DNA of 62,930 nucleotides, counting the filler, from Hyphochytrium catenoides (taxonomy: Eukaryota > Protista > Hyphochytriomycota): assembly GCA_900088475.1 (NCBI GenBank). It is 10 parts of 10 records of this genome, joined end to end, with 100 filler letters (N's around TTAATTAATTAA, not from the genome) between each part and the next. Parts side by side here need not be neighbours in the genome. Positions count along the whole stretch, not along the records: positions 19,260 to 24,625 come from FLMG01001484.1; 9 more parts are not named here. One strand, given 5' to 3'. Shown here in pieces: positions 5,937 to 25,173 of the stretch. The first letter of the stretch is position 1, and every line of letters starts with the position of its first letter. The notes under the pieces are model-generated. The model saw only the letters and a list, made by a program, of their open reading frames with translations, was not told the origin of the DNA and ran no database searches. The translations under genes were made by a program, and so were the position numbers.

Positions 5937-7173
5937 CCTTTTACTGCAGAACACGCAGAAAACATAACCACATAACTTTTGGCATATTGATAATCATATC
6001 ACTTATTTCTCCTGATTATCATGTAAGGACGGGTGGGCACCTATTACTGTTGTAGGTGTAAATAACTATCGACTTTGAGCACTCCACCCGCCGTTTGTTC
6101 AGTTTCTTGGCAAGCCCCTCACTCCCTTCTGCAAGGCGGTGTTCCGAAAGGGTAAGAGCGGAGTAGTAATAACAGGAGATCCAAGGGCCGTGCCTAAAGT
6201 AAGATCCTGCAACAGGAAAATAGTATGAGGTTTGGGCTGTTCCTCCTTCAACCTGCACGCTGGTTCTCTTCCTACCCGTTGTCTCTTGCGTTGTCTTCAT
6301 GTTTTGTCGCCTCAGTGCCCTTTGTAGGTAGGCGGATTCATCAGAAAACGCAGGATTGCTGTTAGCATTGCCTGTTGTACGAGTACCAGCCTGTTCGTCG
6401 GTTGTGTTATGACAACATGTAACATTAACATAAGTTTCATAAATCTGAAATAAAAGGGAAAAAAGCTGTACGACGATCCCATAGTAAAACACCTAACTAC
6501 CCATTCATTCTTTCCAGAACTTTGTTAGTGAATTGGGTTTTTATTCGACAGAATAATAATAATACACTGCCACAAAGCGTGAAATGCATTCTAAAGCTGA
6601 AATAATAGCGCTGACAAACTGGTTCTTTTCCGCCTGCCTCGTGATTCGTGATTGACATCAACAAAATTATTCGCAAACGCCTGTGTTGCTGTCTGTCTCT
6701 GTGCCTGCCTCCTCTCTGTCTCTCTGTATCGCAATTGGGAAAGGGAATAATTTCAGCACCAGAAGCTCGTAATTGCGAAGCGAAATTGCCGTCGCGGCCC
6801 AGTGAGGTTAGTCGACAAAGATCCATCCAGAGATCAACGGGTTGTGGATGCAGATTTTCTCGATCTGTTATCGGCAGTTGGGGCTCTGGCTACTTTGGAG
6901 TCTGAGTTAAGGGTAAAGGTAGAGGGGAGCTGATTCAACCAAGGGCGTGCAACTAAATTAAGCGGAAGAATCGACCTTTCCTGCATTAGCCGTTATTCTT
7001 GGAGGCAAGATTTCCCTCTGCTCTATCAGAGAGCTGATACTTGGCAGTACTGTGAAGGACGTTCACCGACATCACTGTCCCAGCGCTCATTGATGGGCAT
7101 CTATGACACAGGAGCCTCACACTTTAAGCTCTACTCAGGTGGTCCGTAAAGGAACTTTCACCTCAATAAGACT

Positions 7174-9007: not shown

Positions 9008-9320
9008 CGCCGGTCCCTGTGTCTCTACAGGCGACTTAGTGCTCTGTATCCTAGTAGCCCATGACGCTCTGTCTCGCTGTACATAGGACACCCTGTAGCT
9101 ATCCTCTCTGTATATACACAACACGTGGTAGTGATCTCCGTGGAAGATTGCCTTATTCTCTTTGCCGCCACATCTTATCTCGTCCACTTACAAAGGCGAT
9201 GTGGTTCTTTCTGTCGCGTCTCTCTTTCTCTTCCTCGCTAGTGCTCTCTCTCTCTCTTTTCCCCCATACTTTATTCTCATTGACATCTGCTGCATGGGTA
9301 CTGCCAGAGCTTTGCTACTC

Positions 9321-9365
<45 letters not shown>

Positions 9366-9494
9366 NNNNNNNNNNNNNNNNNNNNNNNNNNNNNNNNNNN
9401 NNNNNNNNCTTGACCTCCTCTCTATCTGCAGCTATCTTTTGACTCATCTCCCTCTTCTTTTCATCTCTCTCTCTTCTTTCCTCTTCTATTGTGT

Positions 9495-9929
9495 CCTCTC
9501 CTTTCTCACAAGCTGCGGATTTCCTTCCAGATAAGAGAGAGGGAACTCCTGGATGCTGCAGATCTTCCATGTGCTGTTCTTCACCGTGAGCGGTCTCTCA
9601 TACACGACCACACAGCTATCATCCAATATGATTGAAGGCAGGGTTTCTACGGTCAACGGCGCCTTGCTCTCATCCACTGGATCGTCTGTGCTGCCCAGAC
9701 GGTTGTTGAGCTCGAAGAAGTAGAAGCGACCACTCTCAGAGATGCCACGGACCCAGCGGGAAGAGAGAGACGAAGAAGGAGAGAGACTTTGGGCCTTCTC
9801 TCCTTCCCGAAAGGATATGACTTCAGAGGCGTTTCGTGACTTCAACTGTTTGATGACCTCAGGGACTATGAGCTTGCCTTTGGAGGTATATTCAGCCCGG
9901 GCACGAAGGGTGCCGATGACTAACGATGC
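9495..9929 (-). CDS. Internal exon(s) of an unidentified gene
   Basis: Open, non-repetitive frame (...AEYTSKGKLIVPEVIKQLKSR...WVRGISESGRFYFFEL...) between an AG acceptor and a GT donor, flanked by CT/GA-rich intron sequence. No family recognised. Confidence 0.4.
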
Positions 9930-10069
9930 CTAACAACGAGAAGGAGATACCGAGAAGCGGTTAAGGCAGAGAAGGAGAGAGAGAGGAAGGGGGATGAGAG
10001 AGAAAGAGAAGGGAAGGAGGAGGAGAGAGAGAAGGGAAGGAGGAGGAGAGAGAAAGAAAAAAGGAAGGG

Positions 10070-10169
10070 NNNNNNNNNNNNNNNNNNNNNNNNNNNNNNN
10101 NNNNNNNNNNNNNTTAATTAATTAANNNNNNNNNNNNNNNNNNNNNNNNNNNNNNNNNNNNNNNNNNNN
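10070..10169. other. Artificial contig spacer (44N-TTAATTAATTAA-44N); identical spacers at 19160, 24626, 33867, 47610, 50820, 53197, 59403, 61611
   Basis: Identical 100-nt block with a palindromic six-frame stop linker, repeated nine times; genes are truncated at its edges. Confidence 0.97.
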
Positions 10170-10717
10170 AGAGAGAGAGAGAGGCAAGAAAACTGTTCCG
10201 ACTGTTGGTGTGGCCCTGCTGGTAACCTCTGTTCATCTGGTCAAGGAAGAGGCAGAGGCAATCTCCAGGAACATATATAACCGCTAACGGATATCTAGAG
10301 TTGGAGATATGGCCTGCTCTGTCTCGCGCTGTTGCCTGAGTTACCTTTCATAACTCCGCTCTAAGGTACCACCCAAGAGCTCCTTTTATCCATCTGGAAG
10401 AGTTAAAAAAGCGGACTATGGAGAGGGAAGGCTACATCTCTCAGTAATGGCAACAATCCGAATAAATTAGGAGGCATGACCAAAGTAAGGCCGTATAAAA
10501 GCTAAAGAGTGACTCATCCTAAGAGTAAAACAACATAATTAACAATAGTAATGGTATTTATTTATGTCATCATCGGCAAAAGCCTCCCAGAGATGATGGG
10601 ATCTTTGGCTACCTTCGTGAAGTGTCATCCAAGGAGTTATTGCTAGGAGGAATTGTTCCACTCACCAATAGGGAGTGTGATCTCTTCTGCACCGAGCGCG
10701 GGTAAACGGCGGGAGTA

Positions 10718-19259: not shown

Positions 19260-22200
19260 TCAAGTATTTTGGAGTATTGACAGCCGACGATACCGTCCTA
19301 TCAGCTTCTCAACAACCCGCAGCTCCTTCAGACGATCCATTTGATGCTATATTGAATGGTTATCTCAGTGAGCAGGACGAGTCGGGCCCTGGGGCAGACT
19401 GGTCTGTCAGCATGGCCACAATGGACGTCCGCCTAACTGAAGACTTTCTCCATGCGGCCTCAGAGTGGCTTTATCTGATAAGAGGCAGATCCCTATCAGA
19501 GCTGTTCTTCGTATGTGATGGCCCTAATCCCATGGACGGGGACTCGGACGATCTAACCAGAGTGGCCGAAGCTTTCAAGGACTTCTTTCGTCGGGCTGAA
19601 GGAGCAATCGGAAAGAATTTTCTTCTTCGACAGCATCTTAACACGGTATCGTCCTCTGGTATCAGCGTGGAGCCCTTTCGATTACTCCAAGAAGAGAGCT
19701 CTAGAAGAAAGTATATGCATACTGGCATCAGACTGACATGTTTCTTGTTGCGGGTCTTTGCCGCCGATGGATTGGCTGGTCTTTCTTCGGTGAGAGACGA
19801 CTTTCACGAGCAGTGTACTACAGTCCTGCAACCTCTGGCGTTCCAAGTGCTTCAGGCTCTGCGGAGGGAAGAGAGTATAGAGACTTTATCCGCAGCAGTT
19901 CAAAGACTACTCTTTGCATCTTTCGCGATCGAGCTCGACATCAACTATAGACCGGAATCCTTTCCAGTAGTACAATTTCTCTTGTTCTCAACGCTCGAAC
20001 CGCCTCAGCATTACGTTAACAGCGAAGACCTTGGTGGCAATATGACATTCGCAAAGATACAAAAGGTCACTCCAATCATAGCCATGCTACAGTATATTGC
20101 TCGATGTACCGTGGGCTTAGGGATTGCTGAGACTGGTGAGCGCGACCTTACAACGCCGAACACTCGGACAGCAAACCTGAAGTACCTAAAGCTAGGGCCG
20201 AATACTCCCTTCTCCCATTTAGTTAACCTCATGAGCCTAGCGAGCACGTACTGTTACAGAGCCCCACGACTCCCGAACGTAACTTGGTTGTCCAGTTACC
20301 GTGAAGGTGCTCCGAGGTTTGATGCTTTAATGGTGGACGGTAGTAGGGTAACGCTTGGAGGCATCCGTACCCTGATCGCATCAATAGTCAAAGCTTGCAG
20401 GAGGGCTATCGACGAGGAGCTTCTTCTCGGGCTAAGCTGTGAAGCGAGTCCTATTCATTTTTCTCAATGGGCTGATGACCGATCGAACATTGATGTGGGG
20501 TACGCTTTTTTCAAGCATGGTGACAATAAGTGGGATAAGGATGCCTTCTTCCGCAAGCTTTGTAGCTCGGCGAAGGAGGGCCACACAGCAGCTGATCATT
20601 TGGCACTTACCTTGGCAGTCGTCCCCAGCGCCCATCAAGGAGGATTACAATCTAAGCAAAAGGGTGCCATGGACTATTTGAAGAAGGCCGAGGAAGCCAG
20701 AGAACTCCTCTTAGCGCTGATTCACCTCACGTCGGGCCAGCCTGCTAGGGCAGGTGAACTGCTTACCTATCGAATTCAAAACGGAATGCTTTCGGAGAGA
20801 ACGATATATTTGGACAGTGGCTGTCCCAGCAGATTGGTCTTGGTTTCAAGTTGCCATAAAAGTCGTAATATAGTTGGCAACGACAAGATGATCCTGCGTG
20901 CTCTTCCAAAGGTGGTCAGTATCTATCTCTGGAAGTACTTGGTGCTTGTAAGGCCGTTGGAAGCTAAGCTGGCTGAAGCAATGTATAAAGAGGACGCCAA
21001 GGCGGTGTATGAGGAGTTTTTGTTCGTGAAGAAGAGTGGGCTCATGTCTAAGGAGCAGATTTGTAAAAGCTTTAGAGCTACCTTCGCGAAATACTACCCT
21101 GATGGTGCTACGGCTTTAGGCGTTAAAGCCTACAGGCAAGTAGCAACGGCCTTCGCGGAAAAACATATTCTTGACGACTCATCCCACGAAAACTCTAAAT
21201 TCATGCTGGTACACGAGCAAGCGGCACATTCCTTGTCTACCGCTAACCATTCCTACGGTAATGGCCAGCACGACTTCCGGTATCTAACGCGTGATGCCGA
21301 AGCCAAATTTAAGCGAGGTTCGGAAGCTTGGCATCTGCTCATCGGGTTGACGGATGAGGGAGACGCGAAGGTGACAGACGTGCCTTTACTTGCAGGCGCA
21401 GGAGCTACATTGCAAGAGAGCGTGGGAGAAAGCAATCCGATAAGTTCCGTGGGTGTAAGTACTAAAATTCCTGATGGCAGGAGTACTGTCCACGTTGATC
21501 TTACGGTACGCTCACTGATGTCAACGACTGCCCGCGAGGTTGGGTTTCTTCACCTCTCTCTAAGGCACACGGCGCGATGCCTTAGAGCTCTGCGATGTCT
21601 TCTTGGCGATAACCAAGCAACATTCCATTCGCAGCATCAAGCAGAAGCTGTATGTAGAGTTGCAGCGGGTTCCAGGGAGGACATTGCCTGTGTGTTGCCG
21701 ACGGGGATTGGGAAGACCATGGTATATCTGATACCTGCATTCTTAGAACAGAAGAGCGGTAAGGTAACGGTAGTGGTTGTTCCTCTCGTGGCGTTGTTGA
21801 AAGACATGATTCAAAACGTCAACGCAAGACACAAAGACCAAATCGAATGCCGTGAGTGGGAGCCCCAGTCTCATCGAGGAACGTCTAGTACCGGTGAGAG
21901 TGAAGACCAACCAGTAATGAGGAATACCTCTGGTAGTGCTTACCGACTGGTCTTTGTGCAAGTTGAAAGCGCCGTGAGCCCTGAGTTTAAGAAATTCCTG
22001 ATCCAACTTCATGAGAGCGGATTATTAGCAAGGATTGTGGTGGATGAAGCTCATACTTTGAAGCTCTGGAGCTCCTTCCGGCCAGCGCTAAGAAAATTGC
22101 TGAATCTCCGAGCCGAGGTTGAGGTGCCATTCGTCTTCCTGACAGCGACGTTACCCAAAAGATGGGAGGATGAGTTCAGATCTCCCAAGTGTGGGTTTCC

Positions 22201-23617
22201 ATCCTTGGTTGTAATTCGAGGAAGTCAGCCGCGGCTGAACGTGCAGTATGCGGTGCGGCTGCTTGCAAATGATATCAACACCAAGCAATTGGACGAGGCC
22301 ATCAGAACACGACTTCATCAAGAGGTTGGGAAATTTGCACCTAATGATCGGGCCATCCTCTACGTTCATTCTGTTGAAGCAACCCAGGACTTGGCAGAGA
22401 GCCTGACTACGGACGGCTTTCAGGCCGGCTATTTTCATGGGGAACTCAGCGCAGGCGAGAAAGAAAGAGCTCTCACTTGTTGGAAAGCAGGATTTACGAC
22501 TATCATGGTTGCAACGAAGGCCTTTGGCATGGGGATTGACTATGGGTCAGTCCGCCTTGTTTTACATCGGGGCCATTCGGACTCGCTCATCGATTATCTG
22601 CAAGAGTCTGGGAGAGCAGGTCGAGACGGCTTCCCTTGCCAAGCAGTCGTAATCACTACGCCCATGATGTTGGAGAACTTTGGGTCAAGAATATGTGGGA
22701 GTAATCCTTCAGACCCGGAAGCCGCAGAGAACTACGAGGCTTTCAGGAAATGGGCTCTTGGTGGAGCCTCCGAGTGTCGACGTGAAGGCCTGGAAAGAGC
22801 ATTAGATAAGAAGGCCCATGATTCAAGTTGTTTGTCCAGCGGCTGCGACGTGGCTGGCTTGTGCGATGTCTGTGAGTTTGTGCTCTCTGACAGCAGTGAC
22901 GCGGTAGTTCCTACTGATGTCCTGTATGATCACATCCAACCACTTTCTAGGCATTATGCGGCAGAATGGCAGAGAAAGGAAGAGATCAGGACATATCAGC
23001 TCTGGAAGGCCATCAACGACTTGAATGAATCCTTATATGCCATGCAGCGGAATCATCCATTGGGACTTCCCGGGTGTGGGTATTGTGCGATAATGAGCGG
23101 TAGCTTTATTACGCACGACGCTAGCCGGAAGGAGTATTGCCCCGTAGTGGACGGACGCTGCTACAAATGCCTTGGCTTGATTCGATCCGGACACAGAGCC
23201 GCAGACTGTCCCTACAAGGCCGCAACTGTAGTCCGTGATCGGAAAGATGGCATTTGCTTCTCCTGCCTACTGCCTGACGTGAGCCGAAGCTATAAGTTTC
23301 ACCCCACAATATCAGAAGTAGAGGATAGTACTTTCGGAACAACAGCATGCTGCAACGCGGCGCTGTGCTCCGATCTTCTTCGAACGGTGGCTTGCCGACT
23401 TTGGTGGGATACGTTGGATGAGAGACATAAAAGGGAAGCATGGCTCAAGGAGTTTGACCCCTGCGGCAAGTATGAGCTCGCCGGGTCAATCGAAGCGTTT
23501 ATGCGCTGGCTTCCTCACTGTGCTGAAGGAGAACTCTCTAACGCTTCGAGAATGTTCCTGTGGTTCATTGACGAGGAAAATAAAAGGCTTTATCCAGGTA
23601 AAACATCTAGATACTGA
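19260..23617 (+). CDS. Tyrosine-recombinase-fold domain + RecQ-family SF2 helicase + Zn knuckles; resembles fungal telomere-linked helicases; intronless, 5' truncated
   Basis: Helicase motifs LPTGIGKT, VVVPLVAL, VVDEAH, LTATLP, FHG, VATKAFGMGID, YLQESGRAGRDG. RecQ Zn motif CRR...C...CDVC. CCHC CYKCLGLIRSGHRAADC. N-terminal HLTSGQPARAGEL, CHKS, KAYRQ, QAAHS...HSYG. The frame is open to the contig edge (KYFGV...). Confidence 0.88.
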
Positions 23618-24136
23618 AGTACAGTAAGAGATCGAAATTAGAGTTCAATCTTATCCATTCAATAAAATAAAGTAGATGGAAGATCAAAGTTCTGTGATTC
23701 CGATTTCAGGCATCAACAATATACCGTAGATCTGAATGTTGGGAACCCTTTTCTTCAGGGGTCTCTAAGGCAAGGAATATTCTTCTTCTTGATTCTTGTC
23801 CTACTTTCTTTCTTATAATTTCTCTAGAAAATTGTTCTTACTTCATGAACATTTTTCTCTTTCCGACTTTACTTCTTCCTTATATATATGAGCGGAGAGA
23901 ATCGTCACCCTACCCGCGTGTCGGGCAGCACTTTGCGTGCCAAAAGCTCTGACGGCAGCTCGTGGCAAGGCGACGCAGGCGCCCTAACTAAAGAACCAGC
24001 AGCAGTGGAGTTGTCTGTCACAGACTTGAGCTTGTTTAGAAATAATGATGGTTTGTTCCAGTCATTCCCCGTTTGTCCTATCTTACGATACAGCACTAAG
24101 AAAACAGTCTCATCCAGGTACTAAGAAAGAAGGGCA

Positions 24137-24582
24137 GGCGAGGAGCCACGGTGGACAGGCGGGCGAGGCGCCACAGTGGACGTGTCAAGAAGACTAGAGA
24201 AGGTGGTAGCGGAGGAGACAAGTGAGCTTGTTATCCGTCCTCTGGTCTTAGACTGAACTTCTCTCAGACCGGTCCGTTGCGGAGTTGGTTCATTGTTCTA
24301 AGATAGAACCAGAGAGAGGCAGAAGAGAAAGGTAGGATATTTGCATATTTGCTCATCAGTCTGACTGGGACTAGTAGACACCAAAGACGAGTGAGCCTGT
24401 CCATCCGCTGGTCTCATACTCAAATAATGAGCTCTTCTCTCAGACCAGTCCATTGTGGAGTTGGTTCATCGTAGGGTAGAACCAGAGAGAGGCAGGAGAA
24501 GGTAGGATACTTACTTCTCAAAGTGGCCTCCTGGACGCTAGAAGAGACCATTTAGTTAGTAGACAGTAGAGACAAGTGAGCC
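24137..24582 (+). repeat. Degenerate ~170-185-bp tandem repeats (about 2.3 units) preceded by a 20-bp direct repeat pair
   Basis: AGAC(A/G)AGTGAGC...CTTCTCTCAGACC...GGAGTTGGTTCAT...TAGAACCAGAGAGAGGCAG...GGTAGGATA at ~24215-24342 and ~24384-24512, with a partial third at 24557-24582. GGCGAGG(A/C)GCCAC(G/A)GTGGAC at 24137-24156 and 24162-24181. Confidence 0.8.
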
Positions 24583-25173
24583 TAACTATATTCCCGCGTT
24601 TACCCAGTACGGAGAAAACGAAGATNNNNNNNNNNNNNNNNNNNNNNNNNNNNNNNNNNNNNNNNNNNNTTAATTAATTAANNNNNNNNNNNNNNNNNNN
24701 NNNNNNNNNNNNNNNNNNNNNNNNNTCTCTCTCTCTCTCTCTCGCTCGCTCTCTCTCTCTTTCTCTTTTGCTCTCTCTCTCTCTCTCTTTCTCTTTTGCT
24801 CTCTCTCTCATCAACCTCTCTTTCCCTTCCCTTCTCTTCCCTTTGTCGACTTTCTGGCACAAATCTGCCCTCTCTCTCTCTCTCTCTCTCTCTTTTGACC
24901 TGCATCTCACGCAATCCTTCCTCCCTTGTACAATAAGCTGGGACCATCTCCAAGAGCCAACCAAATCATCATCTGTCTTACCGCCGCGTGCCGCCGCCTG
25001 CCCACCTTCCGGAAGGTCGTGCGGTTCTTTCTTCTCCTCTCTTTCGCTTGTCACTCTTCTCTCTTCAGACCTCCATTCTCCTCTTTCCTTCCCAGCAACT
25101 TGTTGAACGATTCACAAGGAACTGATAGTGGGCATCGAAAGGAGAGAGAGAGAGAGAGAGAGGGACTGAGATC

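Follow-up and report, generated by a model that had tools for sequence, protein, structure and literature searches.

Which enzyme stands ahead of the RecQ helicase in a long open reading frame (ORF) of Hyphochytrium catenoides, and does it work for the host or for the DNA that carries it? The frame is the single long one on the plus strand of a 5.4-kb piece (positions 19260–24625; record FLMG01001484.1) of a 62,930-nucleotide stretch made up of 10 parts of this genome, which we call the window and along which all positions are counted. An earlier note had placed a tyrosine-recombinase-fold domain upstream of the helicase and had taken the protein for that of a new class of mobile element. Our models and alignments argue for such a domain, with a candidate catalytic set that is retained across the family. 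They also place the gene in a family that is already known, the telomere-linked helicases (TLHs). Residues are numbered as in the earlier note, from the TTG at 19277.

AlphaFold2, run with the family alignment, modeled amino acids (aa) 250–705 with a predicted local distance difference test score (pLDDT) of 87 and a predicted template-modeling score (pTM) of 0.86; the putative catalytic domain, aa 452–700, had a pLDDT of 86.8. We compared the catalytic-domain model with 48,161 representative PDB chains using VIA-align. The 33 best matches were all tyrosine recombinases, type IB topoisomerases (TopIB), protelomerases, or known derivatives of this fold. XerA scored highest (Z of 12.2, root-mean-square deviation of 2.9 Å, 153 aa), and Z was 10.4 for Cre, 10.2 for XerH, 8.3 for TopIB, 8.1 for lambda Int, 7.1 for Flp, 5.7 for QRICH1, 5.6 for Ndc10, and 4.1 for TelK, with the first unrelated chain at 3.4. 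Foldseek ranked Cre first (probability 1.0), and a shape search of the ESM Atlas returned clusters of the fungal family itself (TM ∼0.8), then bacterial XerC/PF00589 clusters (TM 0.58–0.60 over 168–181 residues). On these models, what precedes the helicase adopts the tyrosine-recombinase/TopIB fold, as the earlier note had proposed. The subdomain before it (aa 250–451), kept in 59 of the best 150 relatives listed, may be the counterpart of the core-binding domain of recombinases.

The catalytic residues point the same way. Conservation was scored in two sets, one of 123 relatives that are pairwise no more than 50% identical and one of 117 further ascomycete relatives. Across the 240 sequences, R491 is kept in 238, K528 in 240, R620 in 238, H651 in 239, and Y660 in 240, so that the five residues named in the earlier note are 99%–100% conserved in homologs; E494, in the box of the first arginine, is kept in 121 of the 123. 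The catalytic part that K617 had been given did not hold up, its column being variable in both alignments (S/R/A/N/Q/M in relatives), and the supposed "K-x-x-R" box is better written as "x-x-[YW]-R-[HQ]". The nine-residue spacing from histidine to tyrosine was confirmed on the sequences of lambda Int (H333–Y342) and Cre (W315–Y324). In the model, the secondary-structure positions of R491 and K528, and their offsets within the structural-alignment ranges, would fit Cre R173 and K201. Because the Arg-Lys-Arg-His-Tyr pattern is near-invariant in 123 relatives at 50% mutual identity or less, it is far more regular than chance would allow and speaks for a functional active site.

Profile comparisons added some sequence-level links to classical recombinases. 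Aligned by hhalign to lambda Int alone, the domain fell into the correct register, with R620, H651, and Y660 on R311, H333, and Y342 (E of 0.083), and with 11 annotated phage integrases combined into a profile the same register was recovered (E of 0.0022). This profile was used instead of one grown from lambda Int, which in IMG/VR yielded only copies 99%–100% identical to it. No alignment was found by hhalign against the single sequence of Cre. The Pfam family PF00589 (Phage_integrase) has no match in the window protein and matches one out of 121 family members (E of 3.7e-4).

The domain belongs to a large and divergent family. An exhaustive HMMER search with aa 1–780 retrieved 1514 cluster representatives at E up to 1e-3, with a common core at aa ∼455–693 that often reaches back to aa ∼250–300. 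A word-indexed search with aa 300–700 retrieved a single relative, since the family is too divergent for such a method. A RecQ core follows 40–350 aa after the domain in 73 of the best 151 relatives (150 listed, plus P0001). Nearly all of the remaining ones stop within 100 aa past the domain and are therefore regarded as truncated gene models. Fusion to RecQ is the rule for the family, and obligate. A search seeded with the domain of a relative brought in 316 ascomycete proteins at E up to 1e-5; among the best 120 listed are several copies each from Botrytis cinerea and Colletotrichum fructicola, as well as Fusarium and Gaeumannomyces proteins. One B. cinerea protein (P0302, 1820 aa) has the full domain at aa 1024–1323 and an extra partial copy, the C-terminal half of the domain, at aa 279–407.

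The helicase half reads as an ordinary, complete RecQ core, in agreement with the earlier note. Pfam finds DEAD and Helicase_C, and a PDB sequence search matched RecQ5, bacterial RecQ, RecQ1, and BLM at E of 1e-33 to 1e-26; with WRN included, the range extends to 1e-20. Walker A, DEAH, motif III, motif VI, and the zinc cysteines could all be identified. Pfam RecQ_Zn_bind, RQC, and HRDC were not detected in the window protein, the four-cysteine cluster being present nonetheless. As a by-catch, two proteins (P0172 and P0173) have a RecQ core fused to Toprim and type IA topoisomerase domains, an independent helicase–topoisomerase fusion that is analogous in its logic to the recombinase–RecQ fusion described here.

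We then turned to what is known of such proteins. According to the literature, TLHs have two N-terminal C2H2 motifs, a "TLH domain" of ∼250 residues directly upstream of the helicase, and RecQ motifs, and some have additional Cys/His motifs near the C terminus. Their first description dates from 1998, and they are recorded from chromosome ends throughout the fungi and from those of a choanoflagellate. The TLH domain is described there as being of unknown nature, with no assigned fold, and a 2024 preprint calls TLH function undetermined. The same plan, with a ∼250-aa domain before RecQ, C-terminal Cys/His motifs, and C2H2/OrsD fingers, is shared by Magnaporthe oryzae TLH1, Ustilago maydis UTASa, Schizosaccharomyces pombe Tlh1/Tlh2, and the TLHs of Fusarium oxysporum and B. 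cinerea. Our domain profile matched all 119 of 119 ascomycete proteins, including chromosome-end genes of Gaeumannomyces tritici and Fusarium solani, and in a BLASTP comparison the window ORF and its G. tritici counterpart gave colinear matches (E of 6e-27 and 6e-10). By homology, then, the window gene is assigned to the TLH family, the named M. oryzae and S. pombe members being compared through their published layout. This layout and the direct homology to chromosome-end proteins together place the predicted recombinase-fold domain at the position of the TLH domain. What sets the window copy apart from the fungal TLHs is that its closest relatives, at ∼30% identity, are from a chytrid and from soil or metagenome eukaryotes, not from ascomycetes.

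The architecture is therefore not a previously unseen one, as the reading in the earlier note would have had it, and the fusion is no new gene family. The novelty appears to lie in identifying the TLH domain as a tyrosine-recombinase fold. In the searchable literature we found no paper linking TLHs to tyrosine recombinases, a paywalled mention or an automatic domain-database tag being possible, and "telomere-linked helicase" and "integrase" co-occur there only in unrelated contexts.

The copy in the window is cut at its 5′ end. The frame reads without a stop from the first base of the piece to the stop codon (19262–23617, stop at 23615–23617), bearing out the long intronless frame reported before, here 4.36 kb, and its G+C content of ∼50% is even along the ORF and falls past the stop codon. 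Since the frame is open at the left edge, the TTG at 19277 is not the true start; its reading as a start codon is an artifact, this being merely the first start-like codon past the edge, and the N terminus is missing. On the numbering counted from it, R491, K528, K617, R620, H651, Y660, K813, and D923 all lie at the codons assigned to them. Pfam has no match in aa 1–249. In full-length relatives, PF12013 (OrsD, a C2H2-type finger) is found close to the N terminus, and by alignment this region would fall just left of the edge of the piece. The full protein begins with C2H2/OrsD fingers (lost here at the edge), continues through a pre-catalytic subdomain and a predicted tyrosine-recombinase-fold catalytic domain to a RecQ helicase that has its own zinc module, and finishes with Cys/His knuckles (Table 1).

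Table 1. Features of the TLH-family gene and its downstream region in the window (residues counted from position 19277)
Feature	Positions	Strand	Basis
Partial coding sequence, TLH-family protein, at least 1451 codons	19262–23617	+	5′-open at piece edge; stop 23615–23617
N-terminal region, aa 1–249, weakly conserved	19277–20023	+	Some relatives align from aa ∼45–130 on
Pre-catalytic subdomain, aa 250–451: long helical hairpin, small beta sheet, helices	20024–20629	+	AlphaFold2 pLDDT 87
Predicted tyrosine-recombinase-fold catalytic domain, aa 452–700	20630–21376	+	AlphaFold2 pLDDT 86.8; matches published "TLH domain"
R491, candidate Arg I, box G-Q-P-A-R-x-x-E	20747–20749	+	122/123 and 116/117; N terminus of short helix after long helix (model)
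K528, candidate catalytic Lys	20858–20860	+	123/123 and 117/117; between strands 65–75 and 86–91 (model)
R620, candidate Arg II	21134–21136	+	122/123 and 116/117; hhalign onto lambda Int R311
H651, candidate His III	21227–21229	+	122/123 and 117/117; hhalign onto lambda Int H333
Y660, candidate nucleophilic tyrosine	21254–21256	+	123/123 and 117/117; hhalign onto lambda Int Y342
RecQ-type SF2 helicase core	21632–22630	+	Pfam DEAD, Helicase_C; PDB RecQ-family matches
Walker A	21698–21718	+	Motif position within RecQ core
DEAH	22043–22054	+	Motif position within RecQ core
Motif VI	22601–22630	+	Motif position within RecQ core
RecQ zinc-binding cysteine cluster, four Cys, aa 1167–1199	22775–22873	+	Conserved in family alignment; bacterial RecQ matches reach into cluster
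C-terminal Cys/His knuckle cluster, aa 1267–1330, CxxC...H...C patterns	23075–23266	+	Cys/His columns near-invariant in 40 full-length relatives
High-copy repeat, ∼175-bp units, runs to right edge	23735–24625		Direct repeats D1–D3 spaced 173–185 bp

The genomic setting of the relatives turned out to be informative. Homologs are encoded 2–12 kb from chromosome ends with their 3′ end toward the telomere. The clearest case is the chromosome-level assembly of G. tritici, in which the TLH protein is encoded at four chromosome ends, always in this orientation, and (TTAGGG)n begins ∼1.8 kb past the stop codon at three ends and ∼1.3 kb past it at the fourth. The helicase gene there sits in a ∼7.8-kb unit (locus positions 9050–17238, loci L100–L103) whose copies are 99.3%–100% identical over 6.6–7.9 kb. 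At the inner border, all four units start at one identical nucleotide of a 52-bp tandem repeat (3, 4, 5, or 7 copies), beside four unrelated flanks; on the outer side, a 46- to 48-bp array fills the 1.2 kb from the stop codon to (TTAGGG)n. At the end of a 6.5-Mb contig of F. solani (L099), three TLH paralogs lie in tandem, too diverged for a mutual blastn match at E of 1e-50, with a short interstitial CCCTAA tract between the first two (2351–2374) and the terminal TTAGGG array from 23311 on. In C. fructicola, one copy is 11.5 kb away from the end of its contig, toward which its 3′ end points. The literature adds that one B. cinerea strain has 14 subtelomeric TLH copies and two other strains have none, that Fusarium TLH regions have telomere repeats on both borders, and that pseudogenized copies exist.

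Telomere repeats were absent from the first eight loci of relatives examined. Three loci have other features. A relative on a 12-kb metagenome contig (L004) begins 250 bp from the contig end, and behind it come two unannotated ORFs (450 and 664 aa) and a fragment matching an N6/N4 DNA methyltransferase; at 7095–7119 this contig has 2.5 copies of CTAAAAACCC, which may be a telomere-like tract. Another locus (L003) has a 224-bp satellite (11428–15623) 4 kb downstream of the relative. In a third (L007), units of 20–48 bp with GGTTAGGG begin 140 bp past the stop codon (15363–15609) and give way to very AT-rich sequence, and a non-LTR (long terminal repeat) retrotransposon ORF lies upstream of the relative.

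We also asked whether H. catenoides carries more than the one copy seen in the window. In two sequencing runs under this species label the gene assembles as several unitigs, with local excesses of diverged sequence. Depth over the 5′ two-thirds of the gene was, in either run, 1.7× that over the 3′ third, these depths having no single-copy baseline. The variant contigs had 20 listed differences, six of them synonymous and 14 nonsynonymous. Together, the variants and the depth step suggest that the organism has several copies and that constraint on them is relaxed. At aa 526 (20852–20854) the window copy has a cysteine, the family consensus being tyrosine, and tyrosine is found in a variant contig from one run; a contig of the same run has a nonsense change, W861* (21857–21859). 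Copies in the organism therefore differ in intactness. Short pieces of the gene were also seen in soil metagenomes at ∼99%–100% identity.

Past the stop codon lies a repeat whose summed contig depth is ∼20–115× that of the gene in the two runs. Variant contigs and joints are numerous in it. It may represent either a satellite of the subtelomere or an element that is dispersed, and its place after the gene recalls the tandem arrays downstream of the relatives. Joints in the layout of the reads were found solely within this repeat. Rfam and transfer RNA scans of the piece returned no matches.

Taken with the conserved catalytic set, this setting leads us to favor the following reading. We think it rather likely that this is a TLH gene whose TLH domain is an active DNA breaking-and-rejoining module, acting at chromosome ends together with the RecQ motor and probably to the benefit of the unit in which the gene lies. 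The recombinase domain would cut DNA through a 3′-phosphotyrosine link and rejoin it, and the RecQ motor would unwind or branch-migrate the substrate in the course of this reaction. Going one step further, the enzyme might serve its own subtelomeric unit, by moving or copying the unit between chromosome ends or by re-attaching it to them. A unit-serving enzyme would account for the near-identity of TLH units at many ends, for their sharp inner boundaries, and for the variation in their presence among strains.

Several observations pull the other way. The domain profile hidden Markov model hit zero recombinases among PDB sequences at E up to 10, and the links to classical recombinases that come from sequence only are weak, with low hhalign probabilities, yet consistent. 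The equivalent of His II (Cre H289, lambda H308; a lysine in TopIB), three residues before Arg II, is not conserved in the ∼240 relatives, and the loop with Y660 had a pLDDT below 50 in the model of the isolated domain. There is no (TTAGGG)2 in the 5.4-kb piece, and some relatives lie mid-contig (20–64 kb) among ordinary genes. Sharp boundaries and identity across many ends can also be attained by recombination without a dedicated recombinase.

Is the unit itself mobile? This is plausible: the discrete terminus and the presence/absence variation fit a self-propagating unit, the alternatives being break-induced replication and telomere healing. We entertain, tentatively and with some doubt, the stronger proposal that TLH units are an unrecognized class of eukaryotic mobile element, resident in subtelomeres, in which a single recombinase–RecQ protein moves or copies the unit from end to end. 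The repeats at the inner terminus (the 52-bp repeat in G. tritici) would then be the recombinase sites and the telomere the other border. If this is true, the "TLH domain" would be the transposase.

The rival that survives best casts the protein as an enzyme that the host uses in recombination or repair and not as a selfish one: either a one-chain migrator and resolver of Holliday junctions or a helicase with its swivel, used in recombination-based telomere repair and itself immobile. Resolving Holliday junctions is part of the normal chemistry of tyrosine recombinases, and RecQ helicases usually partner a topoisomerase. TopIB shares the fold in our structure search, and P0172 and P0173 offer RecQ–topoisomerase IA fusions. 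The S. pombe tlh genes, moreover, are reported to be induced in telomere crisis and to speed recovery. We nonetheless regard this explanation as unlikely: presence and absence vary among strains of one species, pseudogenized copies exist, and near-identical units with exact boundaries recur at multiple ends, all of which is less in keeping with a core repair gene than with a unit that is dispensable and propagates itself.

Less probable still is the version put forward in the earlier note, in which the gene encodes the autonomous protein of a free recombinase–helicase transposon or episomal replicon; such an element would insert at dispersed sites, form excised circles, and have no relation to telomeres. 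Wherever chromosome-scale context existed, the relatives sat at chromosome ends in a fixed orientation, and the literature describes the family as telomere-linked. No terminal repeats, target duplications, or circle junctions were seen in the 5.4-kb piece, the only joints being those in the downstream repeat. These points outweigh, in our view, what would suit a free element, namely an intact catalytic set fused to a helicase, a long intronless frame, variant and partly degenerate copies in the organism, and relatives inside contigs among ordinary genes, one of them on the 12-kb contig with the methyltransferase fragment.

Inactive recombinase derivatives typically lose their catalytic residues, and it is very improbable that the domain is a catalytically dead fold serving the helicase as a DNA-binding or oligomerization module (as in Ndc10, the Crypton-derived QRICH1/ZMYM, and the phage regulators MrpR and SroF), given that the tyrosine and the lysine never vary and that 99% of ∼240 diverse sequences retain the two arginines and the histidine, even though inactive derivatives are found among the fold matches (Z of 5.6–7.9), the His II position is not conserved, and the tyrosine loop is of low confidence in one model.

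How, then, does a TLH with a predicted recombinase domain compare with known systems? With XerA, XerC/D, XerH, Cre, and lambda Int the domain shares the catalytic fold (Z of 8–12 over 140–156 residues), the order Arg-Lys-Arg-His-Tyr, and the nine-residue step from histidine to tyrosine, and with lambda Int it also shares the register of box II. It differs from these prokaryotic enzymes in its low identity to them (13%–18%), in the lack of a PF00589 match in the window protein, in its variable His II, in being fused to a helicase, and in being encoded in a eukaryotic nuclear genome.

Among eukaryotic systems, Cryptons, DIRS/Ngaro/VIPER elements, and Starship captains (DUF3435) likewise have a tyrosine-recombinase domain, multiple copies, and presence/absence variation. 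TLHs differ from them in having neither a reverse transcriptase nor a cargo structure, in carrying RecQ in the same chain, and in being subtelomeric with a fixed orientation where the location is known. Pfam gave no matches to the families of Cryptons, DIRS elements, or Starship captains (DUF3435, reverse transcriptase) for the window protein or for 121 relatives. Helitrons (HUH plus Pif1) and Academ (DDE plus a RecQ-like helicase) are eukaryotic repeat families that likewise combine a helicase with an enzyme that cleaves DNA. A Helitron was rejected because the upstream domain has the recombinase fold and not HUH and the helicase is SF2 RecQ and not SF1 Pif1; Academ was rejected because the fold is that of a recombinase and not DDE. 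The distinction from Cryptons, DIRS, Starship captains, and Helitrons drawn in the earlier note thus stands, their domain content being different.

The protelomerases TelK, TelA, and ResT have the superfamily fold in common with the TLH domain and act at DNA ends, and ResT is reported to have an ATP-dependent unwinding activity of its own (PMC5388405). As the closest match they were set aside because of their low structural Z of 3.5–4.3. They make hairpin telomeres in prokaryotic linear replicons, whereas the genomes of the TLH relatives have ordinary (TTAGGG)n ends.

A conserved recombinase active site would give this old family of helicases a testable mechanism. It offers a way to account for TLH subtelomeres, with their near-identity across ends, their sharp boundaries, and their gain and loss among strains. 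If confirmed, a recombinase-plus-helicase enzyme would join the short list of eukaryotic tyrosine-recombinase systems and would bear on the reshuffling of subtelomeres, which are often home to effector and secondary-metabolite genes.

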